A stretch of 63,957 nucleotides of DNA, filler included, from Reticulomyxa filosa (Eukaryota; Protista; Foraminifera), in assembly GCA_000512085.1 (NCBI GenBank). It is 15 parts of 15 records of this genome, joined end to end, with 100 filler letters (N's around TTAATTAATTAA, not from the genome) between each part and the next. Parts side by side here need not be neighbours in the genome. Positions count along the whole stretch, not along the records: positions 56,968 to 60,555 come from ASPP01025384.1; 14 more parts are not named here. One strand, written 5' to 3'. This document shows, in pieces, positions 56,753 to 60,655 of the stretch. A model generated the notes under the pieces. It ran no database searches and was not told where the DNA came from. It was given only the letters and a program-made list of their open reading frames with translations. The stretch's first letter is position 1, and the number at the start of each line of letters is the position of its first letter. Made by a program: the position numbers and the translations under genes.

Positions 56753-57444
56753 CAATGATTAATTTAAATTATTGTAAAATGAATTATATGTCTATAAATA
56801 GTTTACACAAAAGTATGCTTGTTTTTATTAAATATTTTGAAAATATGAAAAAAATTACGATCTTCATNNNNNNNNNNNNNNNNNNNNNNNNNNNNNNNNN
56901 NNNNNNNNNNNTTAATTAATTAANNNNNNNNNNNNNNNNNNNNNNNNNNNNNNNNNNNNNNNNNNNNTTTTAAATATCAAAATTTTGAAATATCAATTAA
57001 AAAAAGTAACAATAAAGAAAATTAGCAAAAAAAAAAATTTTAATATTTAAAAACAAGATTAATAGATATTTTTTAAAAAAAAAATTATGTTTAAATGTTT
57101 ATTTTTCATGGAAAAAATCGATTATCTTCGTATAGTGCCATTTAGGTATGTCAGTTTTTTTTGCAATCTATTGTATTGCCCATTCAGTTGTAATCTCTAA
57201 AGTTGTGATCATTTAAACTGGTACAACAGTACAATAACATATCGCTTAATGCCTTTTGCGAAAATTATATTTAAGCAAAATATTTAGCTAATGACAGTAA
57301 ACGCTTTTTAATTTTGTCTTTACAGTCCTTTCTTTTTCCGCAGAGGCAGTAAAAGATATATAACAAAAAAGTAATTTTATACAAACTAACAAATTAATTT
57401 CAAATTTAAATATTTAATTTTCTTCATATAAGACTATTTAGGAT

Positions 57445-57637
57445 TGCGGTTTCGCCCTACCGTTGGGCTCATCAGTGCTGTCAGGTTGCAGAAGGACCGG
57501 TCACAATATGCCGACCAACTACTAGCCGCTTATCGTTGTTCCTCTTATTCAGAGATCGCTAGCGGCCCTCATATACCAAGTCTCCTGATTCACAGAATAA
57601 AAAACAGTTGCTTGAAATATGAAAACAGCATACCGCA
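57445..57637 (-). ncRNA. Hammerhead ribozyme HH1, type III topology with a ~143-nt insert in loop I; predicted cleavage GUA between 57631 and 57630
   Basis: Minus strand: UGCGGU-A|UGCUGU-(insert)-ACAGCA-CUGAUGA-GCCC AACGGUA GGGC-GAA-ACCGCA. Helix I is 6 bp, helix II 4 bp, helix III 6 bp, all Watson-Crick. Confidence 0.85.
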
Positions 57638-59115
57638 GATTGACTATCCGCCGCTTAGAGTCTGTTTCCGCATTACTTAGATAAGAACTCCAAACCCTTA
57701 GCTATCCATAATTGTACTATGGTGCACGGGACTTAACCCATGGTACATACCTAATACAACTATGGACCACCCGGCCTTTACGCATGCATATGTATGCACC
57801 TGTCCAAAATTCGGCACAGGGTCCTGTCCGCACAACCAGATAGACCCCCCATAACCGGGATATTGGACAACCTCAAAGGTCTATGAATGTCCTGTAGAGC
57901 CCCCTCTACAGGCCCCATCCATAGTGCTTTGGGCCGTAAGTGTCGACGGCATAATCAATCTACTAGGGACCTATGTTTAATAGGCCCACTCTATCTCGAG
58001 AAGTAGAATGGTGGAGATTATACTCATGGGAGTTAATCTCCAATAAACTTGACCCCCTAGCCTTATGAGGTAGAATACCTCAAGGAATCCATTTTCCATG
58101 CTCGGGTTACAAGTTCTCCTATTTAAGCATAGGGCTTTATGTTTAATAGGCCCGTTCTACCATTTACATATAACGGATCAATCTAGCCCGCGCAGTAAGC
58201 AGTAGAAGGTGGAAATTATACTCATGGGAGTTAATCTCCAATAAACTTGCCCCCCTAGCCATTATGAGGTAGAACACCTCAAGGAAACCATTTCCCAGGC
58301 TAGTGTTACAAGTTCTCCCTATTTAAACATATCCCTTCCCGTATCCCAAAGTCTGCGAGGTCAACAATAGATCGTAAATTGACCATCCGCCGCTTAGAGT
58401 CTGTCTCCGCATTACTTAGATAAGAATCTCCAAACCCTTAGCTATCCATATTCTTCTATGGTGTCTGCTGACTTAACAGCAGCCATACCGATGTATGGGA
58501 CCACGACCATAGCCGATATATGGACCACCCGGCCTTTACGCATGCATATGTATGCACCTGTCCAAAATTCGGCACAGGGTCCTGTCCGCACAACCAGATA
58601 GACCCCCCATAACCGGGATATTGGACAACCCCAAAGGTCTATGGATGTCCTGTAGAGCCCCCTCTACAGGCCCCATCCATAGTGCTTTGGGCCGTAAGTG
58701 TCGACGGCATAATCAATTTACTAGGGACCTATGTTTAATAGGCCCACTCTACCTCGAAATAGAATGGTGGAGATTATACTCATGGGAGTTAATCTCCAAT
58801 AAACTTGACCCCCTAGCCTTATGAGGTAGAATACCTCAAGGAATCCATTTTCCATGCTCTGGTTACAAGTTCTCCTATTTAAGCATAGGGCTTTATGTTT
58901 AATATGCCCGTTCTACCATGTACATATAACGGATCAATCTAGCCCGCGCAGTAAGCAAAGTAGAAGGTGGAAATTATACTCATGGGAGTTAATCTCCAAT
59001 AAACTTACACCCCTAGCTGTTATGAGGTAGAACACCTCAAGGAAACCATTCCCCAGGCTAGTGTTACAAGTTCTCCATATTTAAACATATCCCATCTCGC
59101 TTTCTAAAGTCTACG
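57634..59115 (-). repeat. Two tandem structured units: A 57634-58357 and B 58373-59115
   Basis: Near-identical over most of their length (e.g. ATCCGCCGCTTAGAGTCTGT, TATGGACCACCCGGCCTTTACGCATGC). Several differences fall in loops or are compensatory. Confidence 0.93.
57972..59089. repeat. Four copies of a 160-195-nt multibranch module (57972-58131, 58138-58331, 58730-58887, 58894-59089)
   Basis: Each is bounded by inverted repeats TATGTTTAATA(G/T)G ... C(C/A)TATTTAA(G/A)CATA and contains GGA(G/A)ATTATACTCATGGGAGTTAATCTCC and TGAGGTAGAA(T/C)ACCTCA hairpins. Confidence 0.9.
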
Positions 59116-59117
59116 GG

Positions 59118-59179
59118 GGCAGCATACCTTACTTTAATTAGAAAGGTTTCGCCCCGCCATTGGGCTCATCAGTGCTGCC
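59118..59179 (-). ncRNA. Hammerhead ribozyme HH2, canonical type I; predicted cleavage GUA between 59125 and 59124
   Basis: Minus strand: GGCAGCA-CUGAUGA-GCCC AAUGGCG GGGC-GAA-ACCUU UCUAAUUAAAGU AAGGU-A|UGCUGCC. Helix I is 7 bp, helix II 4 bp, helix III 5 bp. Confidence 0.93.
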
Positions 59180-59323
59180 AGGCGTATTATAGCCTTTTTA
59201 AGACTTTTGATAGTTTATTTTACTCGTATTGTTATAGCTACTGAAGTTGCTCGCACCCTCCTGTCTCTGCAAAGCTCCCCAAAGGGTTTTGCTGAGTAGG
59301 TTGCGGACCGACTGGGCTTCAGT

Positions 59324-59367
59324 AGCGCATACGGTTTCGCCCTACCTTTGGGCTCATCAGTGCTCTC
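59324..59367 (-). ncRNA. Hammerhead ribozyme HH3, intact core; local fold is a minimal type I with vestigial helix III
   Basis: Minus strand: GAGAGCA-CUGAUGA-GCCC AAAGGUA GGGC-GAA-AC C GU-A|UGCGCU. Helix I has one mismatch. Confidence 0.7.
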
Positions 59368-60655
59368 AGGTCGAGATGTGCTTTCCACTAGCCATCCCCT
59401 ATGGGCTTCCTAGCGACAAAGTCTTCACTAGTCTCCATATACCTCTGGAGGTCCTAGTACGACTATGCTAGGCATAGGGTGCAATTAGTGGCATCTCTAT
59501 TGGGGAACGGTAACCTTCGGCTAGACAACCATGGGCAGAGTGTGGCCGCCTAGTCCATCTTCGACTAGGTTGACCTATCTCCACGTCTCAGGTGGAGTAT
59601 AGGAGCGTCCTATTCTACCAGTTGTAAAGCTATCGTCAGTTGGCAGCCTATCAGTGTCTCTTCGAACACGAGACTTATAGAAAGGCGTGCAGAGCTGTCC
59701 GGACAGTTACACTAGACCCAATCCCCTTAGACCTTCTGTGCGGCGCCCCCGTGAAGTATAAGGCAGCTCTACGATTACTTTCGGAAGGAGTAGAGCTTAT
59801 TAATAGTCCGGGCACCACAAGGCATGAATGCTCCCACCTCTCACGAGGTGGCTTGTGTCGGCGTACTTGGCCAATTCCCGTTGGTCTTTGCAAATGGGCC
59901 GGAACTATGTTACTATCACTCCCCCCGATCTTTTGTAGCTAAGTCCTAAGACATCGCTACGCTGATATCGGTTCGGTTCACCCACCCCGGGCAAACAGGA
60001 GTAACGTCCTCCCAGGAGTAATAAGGTTGTTTTCGCCATCCTACAGGCACCATAAGGTCCTTCTGTAGTAGGCTACTTACTAGCTGCAACGTTTATTACC
60101 CCCTTTATCAATGAAGAGGGCCAACTATTAATAAGATACTCGGTCCTTAGCAATTAGGAACGCGTACCTTATAACAGCACGAAGAGTCGCTGGTCCCTTA
60201 GGGAAGATCAGACCGTGAACCACCCCAATCCTATTTGTCCACCGCCGGTGAGCTGCAGAACAGCAAACACCGGAGGGCCCTACTTCTCCGTCTCTCGGGA
60301 CAAGCCCGCGGAGTGGAGTAGGGTAGGAGAGCAAGTGGTAATATTCGGTGTATTGTTATTGATAAGCCATGCTTTCAATAACAAGCGCGAATATTGATAT
60401 GATGTTTTTAGGCATCATATGTTCACCTACATACAACCCAGTATGCAGACTGAATACTTGATATGATCGCATATCCAGTTTTTACCTGAGCTTAAGGCGG
60501 GTATTGAGTTATCCTCAATACGGGCTTTCGCACTAACTTGCATTACTTGTCCCCCNNNNNNNNNNNNNNNNNNNNNNNNNNNNNNNNNNNNNNNNNNNNT
60601 TAATTAATTAANNNNNNNNNNNNNNNNNNNNNNNNNNNNNNNNNNNNNNNNNNNN

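Follow-up and report, generated by a model that had tools for sequence, protein, structure and literature searches.

Which RNA is encoded by two adjacent, nearly identical and strongly folding segments in the genome of the foraminiferan Reticulomyxa filosa, and from which strand would it be read? The segments lie in a window of 63,957 nucleotides (nt), the whole stretch of DNA under consideration, which is joined from 15 parts of assembly GCA_000512085.1. We analyzed the piece containing them (56968–60555, 3.6 kb, from record ASPP01025384.1), and all coordinates are given on the window. A preliminary description, which followed the strand as read (plus), had proposed a large structured RNA of unknown family at 57634–59115, duplicated and selected for its fold. 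We find that this span is almost exactly the segment between two predicted hammerhead cleavage sites on the minus strand (59124 to 57631). Since the ends of the duplicated units coincide with these two sites, the domain therefore corresponds to a predicted 1494-nt minus-strand RNA, in the following called the cargo. The preliminary description missed the minus-strand hammerhead cores as well as an internal duplication within each unit. Taken together, the features of the locus make it probable that we are dealing with a retrozyme-like cassette, read from the minus strand, for a noncoding RNA (ncRNA) that is processed by ribozymes.

Genome-encoded hammerheads are best understood in the retrozymes of plants, which carry long terminal repeats (LTRs), and in the tandem-repeat retrozymes of animals; in both groups a ribozyme is always part of the circle that is excised. 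To our knowledge such hammerhead elements have hardly been described in unicellular eukaryotes. In algae and oomycetes, candidate elements with hammerheads in tandem have been reported before (PMC5680766).

Hammerhead cores and predicted cleavage sites

Three hammerhead cores are located on the minus strand of the piece (57450–57475, 59147–59172 and 59335–59360), and none on the plus strand. In minus sense each of them consists of CUGAUGA, a 4-bp helix II with a 7-nt loop and a following GAAA, and the invariant core nucleotides (C3-U4-G5-A6-N7-G8-A9 ... G12-A13-A14) are present in all three copies. A repeat search recovered them as a 40-nt direct repeat (57447–57486, 59144–59183 and 59332–59371, with spacings of 188 and 1697 nt), which at 85% identity is the only direct repeat flanking the cargo. 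We refer to the corresponding hammerhead ribozymes (HHR) as HHR1, HHR2 and HHR3 in the order of their coordinates. HHR1 and HHR2 are complete and enclose the cargo.

HHR2 (59118–59179, minus strand) is a complete type I hammerhead. Helix I pairs GGCAGCA (59179–59173) with UGCUGCC (59124–59118) and is followed by CUGAUGA (59172–59166), helix II (59165–59151) and GAAA (59150–59147); helix III is formed by a hairpin (59146–59127), after which U16.1 at 59126 and the unpaired cleavage nucleotide A59125 are found. The predicted cut falls at 59125/59124 (GUA/U, the slash marking the cut); in minus sense, unit B of the cargo starts with the base after it, 59124. The unconstrained minimum free energy (MFE) structure of minus 59215→59095 shows the three-way junction of HHR2, which is also formed within a 1965-nt transcript (59400→57436).

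HHR1 (57441–57649, minus strand) has a complete type III topology but is discontinuous: its substrate strand is located 141 nt upstream of the catalytic strand, in minus sense, and lies where unit A ends. Here helix III is formed by UGCGGU (57637–57632) and ACCGCA (57450–57445), and helix I by UGCUGUU (57630–57624) and GACAGCA (57482–57476), closed by a branched 141-nt insertion (57623–57483). CUGAUGA (57475–57469), helix II (57468–57454) and GAAA (57453–57450) complete the core. A57631 is unpaired, and the predicted cut at 57631/57630 (GUA/U) adjoins 57631, with which unit A ends in minus sense. The unconstrained MFE structure of minus 57650→57436 gives exactly the complete HHR1 fold. In the 1965-nt transcript helices I and III and the unpaired A57631 are retained; an extension of helix III, GGAU (57649–57646) with AUCC (57444–57441), is seen in the local fold only and is lost in the transcript, where 57646–57649 pair inside the cargo. 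Two other assignments of HHR1, a truncated type I hammerhead and a compact type III form using the nearby CCGGUC site, as drawn in the Rfam alignment, were rejected: that helix I fails to form, whereas the distant site 57631 provides 7+6 bp.

In both HHR1 and HHR2 U16.1 pairs with A15.1, while A17 is unpaired (GUA/). Helices I, II and III have lengths of 7, 4 and 4+2 bp in HHR2 and of 7, 4 and 6 bp in HHR1, as determined from the unconstrained MFE structures. To rank possible cleavage sites, every UH dinucleotide in the piece was scored for contiguous pairing with the arms of each core, without requiring proximity of site and core. A57631 ranked top for core 1 (7+6 bp) and A59125 for core 2 (7+5 bp); among 1000 shuffles of the piece the corresponding P values were 0.003 and 0.029, and 0.11 for core 3. 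The two live sites share the 9-mer GGUA/UGCUG (GGUAUGCUG), which occurs in the piece only at 57634–57626 and 59128–59120. Between HHR1 and HHR2 helix I differs by a compensatory G-C to A-U exchange and by a G-C to G-U exchange, and in helix III CCGCA/UGCGG takes the place of CCUU/AAGG. These compensatory differences between the two copies are internal covariation support for the predicted hammerhead fold.

A further site-like sequence, GGUGUU/UGCUGUUCU, is present on the minus strand at 60258–60274. It offers a helix I of 7 bp with cores 1 and 2, but a helix III of only 2 bp, and may be a relic cleavage site.

Organization of the cargo and coding capacity

The piece is very AT-rich up to about 57440 (16–30% GC) and reaches 40–53% GC across its remainder, with the jump in GC, to 45–53%, at 57441, directly past HHR1. 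The cargo (57631–59124, minus strand, 1494 nt), which would be released by HHR2 and HHR1, is made up of two units: unit A (57631–58369, 739 nt) forms its 3' half and unit B (58370–59124, 755 nt) its 5' half in minus sense. The duplication noted in the preliminary description is confirmed: the units of about 740 nt are direct copies arranged in tandem, with 91% identity over 754 aligned columns (BLAST) or 93% mean column identity (MAFFT). Over long stretches the identity amounts to 98%, and the differences cluster at the unit ends and in one badly diverged segment (57722–57760 in A, 58460–58518 in B). Most of the difference in length is accounted for by 58483–58528, where 1.9 copies of a 24-nt unit, CCATACCGATATATGGGACCACGA, stand in tandem in unit B only. 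A and B are mainly the product of a recent DNA duplication.

An older duplication is found inside each unit; that of unit A spans 57999–58331 (minus strand) with sub-repeats at about 58001–58131 and at 58203–58331, and the counterparts in unit B are located at 58757–58887 and 58958–59089. According to self-BLAST its core has a length of about 133 nt, or about 200 nt including flanks, with 86–90% identity. At the joint of B and A (58362–58376, minus strand) a decayed copy of the cleavage site is found, which reads ...ACGAUC/UAUUGUUGACC compared to ...GGUA/UGCUG... in the live sites. From the decayed copy it seems that DNA duplication doubled an ancestral cargo about 740 nt in length.

The cargo contains only the substrate strands of the two ribozymes (5' UGCUGCC..., ...UGCGGUA 3') and no ribozyme core: a CUGAUGA...GAAA core is absent from units A and B on both strands. 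The absence of a convincing open reading frame (ORF), noted before, was borne out as well. All 21 ORFs of the piece are short, the longest comprising 100 amino acids (aa); the six longest gave no match to Pfam, and no homologues were found for two translated ORFs among 5.8 billion proteins. A coding function was rejected. No transfer RNA (tRNA) or transfer-messenger RNA (tmRNA) was detected in the piece, and such an origin was rejected as well. Sigma-70-like promoters and intrinsic terminators were not above chance. An Rfam scan, which the preliminary description had suggested as a check, assigned no family to the 740-nt unit.

Folding of the cargo and choice of strand

The cargo folds with an MFE of −589 kcal/mol, 74% of its bases being paired at a GC content of 45%, and the outermost bases at its 5' end pair with those at its 3' end. 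Each unit taken alone is 72–73% paired. On either strand, folding is much stronger than chance would give: for unit A we determined an MFE of −290.4 kcal/mol on the minus strand (z −8.6) compared to −227.1 kcal/mol on the plus strand (z −5.8), a gap of 63 kcal/mol.

The individual pairings of the preliminary description, given in plus-strand letters, could be recovered. The stems CCTGTAGAG/CTCTACAGG, nested in CTATGRATG/CATCCATAG, are found in both units, and CCATA/TATGG closes unlike loops (57707–57723 and 58446–58461). At the unit termini CGCAGA pairs with TCTGCG in A and CGTAAA with TCTACG in B; one double change here is compensatory, and in addition there is one A·C mismatch that corresponds to a U·G wobble on the minus strand. 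A hairpin with the loop ACTTAA is present in both units, with the stem GGG/CCC in A and CTGCTG/CAGCAG in B. On the minus strand this variable hairpin segment (57722–57760 in A, 58460–58518 in B) reads CAUGGG-UUAAGU-CCCGUG in A and CUGCUG-UUAAGU-CAGCAG in B, so that the 6-nt loop UUAAGU is kept while four of the six stem pairs are exchanged. Owing to a U·G pair, the stem of unit A is contiguous over 6 bp only in minus sense.

We also assessed strand and selection from the substitutions themselves. For the wobble test, stems were taken from a fold allowing Watson-Crick pairs only, which treats both strands alike. With sub-repeat 1 as reference, changes in sub-repeat 2 at paired positions resulted in G·U pairs three to five times on the minus strand and zero times on the plus strand; the strand-symmetric comparison of A and B was uninformative (5 vs 3; 8 vs 5). 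The location of all hammerhead cores, the better MFE and the asymmetry of the G·U changes make minus the most likely functional strand, rather than the plus strand that the preliminary description followed. Outside the variable hairpin, A and B differ by 31 substitutions, which break 8 predicted pairs compared to about 13 expected (permutation, P about 0.02 on the minus strand). On the plus strand the same test gave P values of 0.02 and 0.25 with two references. One clean double change, G-C to A-U, is found at alignment columns 412/754 in the long stem joining the 3' end of the unit to its middle. Hence the preliminary claim of selection on the fold holds in so far as a few differences preserve the structure. 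With two units and four sub-repeats the comparison is statistically weak and falls short of what an R-scape test demands, so that the compensatory evidence for selection is real but thin.

Features flanking the cargo and search for relatives

HHR3 (59335–59371, minus strand) has a conserved core and helix II and lacks a substrate strand for helix I in cis. Its best partner in the site scan is the distant 57631 with 4+6 bp (P 0.11). As an active ribozyme it was rejected, since neither GUC near 59306 nor GUA at 59221 has a helix I partner; judged by its sequence, HHR3 looks orphaned or decayed. In the fold of the full transcript a long hairpin (59222–59335, minus strand) with a 10-bp stem, GCUACUGAAG/CUUCAGUAGC, is located 3' of the GAAA of HHR3. 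This hairpin ends in a GUA triplet (59223–59221) and could serve as an alternative, very long helix III, still without helix I. Between the HHR2 and HHR3 blocks lies an AT-rich stretch of about 50 nt (59184–59235, 20–35% GC), the composition of which resembles that of the left flank. It may be the joint of two adjacent insertions or the site of a promoter of the cassette.

Upstream of HHR3 in minus sense, the region 59372–60555 folds strongly on both strands (MFE −440 kcal/mol minus, −409 kcal/mol plus) and contains several perfect hairpins, for example near 60341–60396 and 60495–60520. Neither Pfam matches nor protein homologues were found for this region, which could be another cargo starting beyond the end of the piece. 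The AT-rich left flank contains an A-rich low-complexity stretch with a 16-nt period (56994–57039) and a 19-nt inverted repeat (56968–56986 with 57034–57052). A TAAGACT motif occurring on both flanks was considered as a target-site duplication (TSD) and rejected as not significant.

Exact-pattern scans for the 740-nt unit in viral contigs, metagenome contigs and prokaryote genomes returned nothing related, nor did BLASTN searches of phage and plasmid records. Searching with the hammerhead core pattern yielded only unrelated bacterial and phage hammerheads and one unrelated type I hammerhead. Two near-identical type III hammerheads are located 590 nt apart on one strand of metagenome contig JACCDG010278727.1 (4149–4767), and outside the core they are unrelated to the window. 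The metagenome contig MKWU01031771.1 carries a well-formed type I hammerhead (1150–1260) with helix I CACUGCA/UGCAGU and a cleavage site after GUC, without similarity to the cargo.

Proposed processing and alternative explanations

The motifs, their pairings, the exact boundaries of the units and the strand bias are directly present in the DNA. From this arrangement we infer cleavage and circularization of the RNA. A minus-strand transcript starting upstream of 59180 would fold the compact type I HHR2 first, with its cut after A59125, at the 3' edge of this ribozyme. It would continue through the two structured units of about 740 nt and end in HHR1, the substrate strand of which is the 3' end of the cargo and which would cleave after A57631, at the 5' edge of the ribozyme. 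Cleavage at both sites would yield a ribozyme-free RNA of 1494 nt with a 5'-OH and a 2',3'-cyclic phosphate. Its paired ends would present the geometry used by host RtcB or tRNA ligases for making circles. Tertiary loop contacts between helix I and loop II are needed for fast hammerhead cleavage in vivo. The released RNA would be viroid-like, possibly circular and possibly an intermediate of retrotransposition, and mobility as well as a cellular role are inferred along the same line. A more specific version, which we put forward tentatively and consider doubtful as it stands, is a natural ribozyme-flanked cassette of new architecture in an AT-rich genome: an inward-facing type I and a discontinuous type III hammerhead would free a ribozyme-less RNA of about 1.5 kb, which a host ligase would circularize. 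Within this version it is possible, with a similar degree of doubt, that the ancestral released RNA measured about 0.74 kb.

Several observations weigh against a retrozyme-like cassette. HHR3 has no substrate and the site at the A/B joint is decayed, so that the locus is degenerating in part. Neither a second copy nor a homologue turned up in the collections searched, so that mobility is conjectural, and comparison of the flanks revealed no significant TSD (P 0.5, the right-hand end of the element being undefined within the piece). The Rfam scores are low: 18.9 bits for HHR1 and 24.2 bits for HHR2 with Hammerhead_3 (clan CL00010; gathering threshold 48.5), 24.4 bits for HHR2 with RAGATH-1-hammerhead (threshold 56.3) and 14 with HH9 (threshold 52). 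These models penalize long insertions in helices I and III, and the low score of HHR1 is due to its insertion. Finally, the locus is a member of neither described retrozyme family, as it has no LTRs, no hammerhead in each repeat, mixed topologies and a ribozyme-free product. The main rival explanation is decaying repeat DNA, that is, a tandem or satellite-like repeat with relic hammerheads of an old retrozyme or Penelope-like insertion that is no longer transcribed or cleaved. The missing cis substrate of HHR3, the degenerate cleavage-site copy between the units, sub-threshold Rfam scores and a single known locus without homologue in the collections searched are in line with this explanation, and the indels between A and B and the local 24-nt duplication are what neutral drift predicts; the strong fold would then be left over from the past of the element or result from internal inverted repeats. 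However, HHR1 and HHR2 have retained all invariant core nucleotides, their helices I (7 bp) and III (5–6 bp) are kept by means of compensatory differences, and fewer pairs than expected are lost to the substitutions that separate A from B (P about 0.02). We regard decay as unlikely, both as the state of the locus and as the source of its fold.

The dimeric structure of the cargo would also be accounted for by an endogenized complementary DNA (cDNA), if a head-to-tail dimer of a viroid-like or satellite rolling-circle RNA of about 740 nt had been captured beside hammerhead sequences. Head-to-tail units joined at a cleavage-site sequence, 72–74% pairing and the lack of an ORF fit such an origin, but the monomer has no ribozyme core on either strand and so would be unable to process multimers of itself, the divergence of the units amounts to 7–9%, more than in copies off one template, and no related RNA was found in the viral or metagenome collections. 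It seems very unlikely to us. We give hardly any weight to the model of the preliminary description, an autonomous structured ncRNA on the plus strand, duplicated and unrelated to the adjacent ribozymes. While the plus-strand fold also exceeds chance (z −5.8), Watson-Crick stems are strand-symmetric, so that the stems listed exist on both strands, and the unit matches no Rfam family, the unit ends are, to the base, the cleavage sites of two minus-strand hammerheads, and the minus fold is better by 63 kcal/mol. Moreover, A·C mismatches in several stems, including the hairpin of unit A, become G·U pairs on the minus strand, and with one of two references the plus-strand permutation test was not significant (P 0.25). 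What stands of the large functional ncRNA proposed there is its noncoding nature and its very strong fold; instead of being free-standing, it appears as a cargo between two hammerheads. The cassette read from the minus strand thus remains the explanation that we favor.

Comparison with known ribozyme-processed RNAs

Among the closest known systems are the LTR retrozymes of plants (Cervera, Urbina and de la Peña 2016, PMC4918200; PMC5680766). The circular RNAs (circRNAs) of plant retrozymes have a length of 600–1000 nt and are more than 70% self-paired (PMC5680766). Like them, the RNA of our locus is noncoding and predicted to be strongly branched and more than 70% self-paired, and in both cases it is bounded by two hammerhead cleavage sites, which are predicted here. 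Ends carrying 5'-OH and 2',3'-cyclic phosphate, suited to ligation into circles, are expected in both; here the element forms a GC-richer island in AT-rich DNA. Plant retrozymes span 600–1000 nt between the two sites; our unit of 739–755 nt would fit this range, whereas the segment between the live sites is a 1494-nt dimer. They carry a type III hammerhead in each of two LTRs about 350 bp long, while in our locus the repeat is restricted to the 40-nt core and the upstream ribozyme is of type I. Their circles always rebuild a hammerhead, in contrast to the predicted RNA, which contains no complete one. Their GC content is about 55% compared to 45% here, and their primer-binding site (PBS), polypurine tract (PPT) and 4-bp TSD were not identified in our piece.

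With the non-LTR retrozymes of metazoans (Cervera and de la Peña 2020, PMC7229834; bioRxiv 10.64898/2026.07.22.740005) the locus shares a GC content below 50%, the lack of LTRs, and hammerhead copies arranged in tandem along one strand; they have no PBS or PPT, and none was identified here. Their hammerheads are of type I and, like HHR2, have a proper helix III. They are expressed as monomeric RNAs, both linear and circular, and occur in many genomic copies. They are, however, built from monomers of 150–450 bp with one hammerhead each, whereas our units of 740 nt contain no core, and the downstream ribozyme of our locus has type III topology. The hammerheads of Penelope-like elements are minimal type I forms with a helix III of 1–2 bp that act as dimers, compared to 4+2 bp in HHR2 and 6 bp in HHR1. 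These elements have an adjacent ORF for reverse transcriptase and GIY-YIG endonuclease, while here no ORF exceeds 100 aa and none of those tested matches Pfam.

In the discontinuous hammerhead of rodent Clec2 transcripts the insertion comprises hundreds of nt, compared to 141 nt in HHR1. As in HHR1, an insertion closing helix I sets the substrate strand of this ribozyme apart from its catalytic strand (Martick et al. 2008, cited in PMC3088659 and PMC7761336); the Clec2 ribozyme is placed alone in the 3' untranslated region of an mRNA, whereas HHR1 is paired with a second hammerhead for the predicted excision of an ncRNA. Clustered hammerheads in prophages (Perreault et al. 2011, PMC3088659) bracket a transcript segment with several copies on one strand and would excise it, as here, but enclose bacterial protein-coding genes, while our cargo is noncoding.

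The same logic as in our scheme is used in engineered circRNA cassettes based on twister ribozymes (PMC7229834): the 5' ribozyme cuts at its 3' edge and the 3' ribozyme at its 5' edge. Their cargo is free of ribozymes and has paired ends for ligation by RtcB, as predicted for the cargo described here. These cassettes are synthetic and built from twister, and our locus, if read correctly, would be a natural version based on hammerheads. What was a vague unknown structured RNA becomes a testable prediction, namely two exact cleavage sites and one back-joined junction. If the prediction is true, two inward-facing hammerheads of unlike topology with a ribozyme-free, viroid-like product would widen the range of ribozyme-processed RNAs, extend the biology of hammerhead circRNAs to a lineage outside plants and animals, and provide a natural counterpart to the engineered ribozyme-flanked cassettes.

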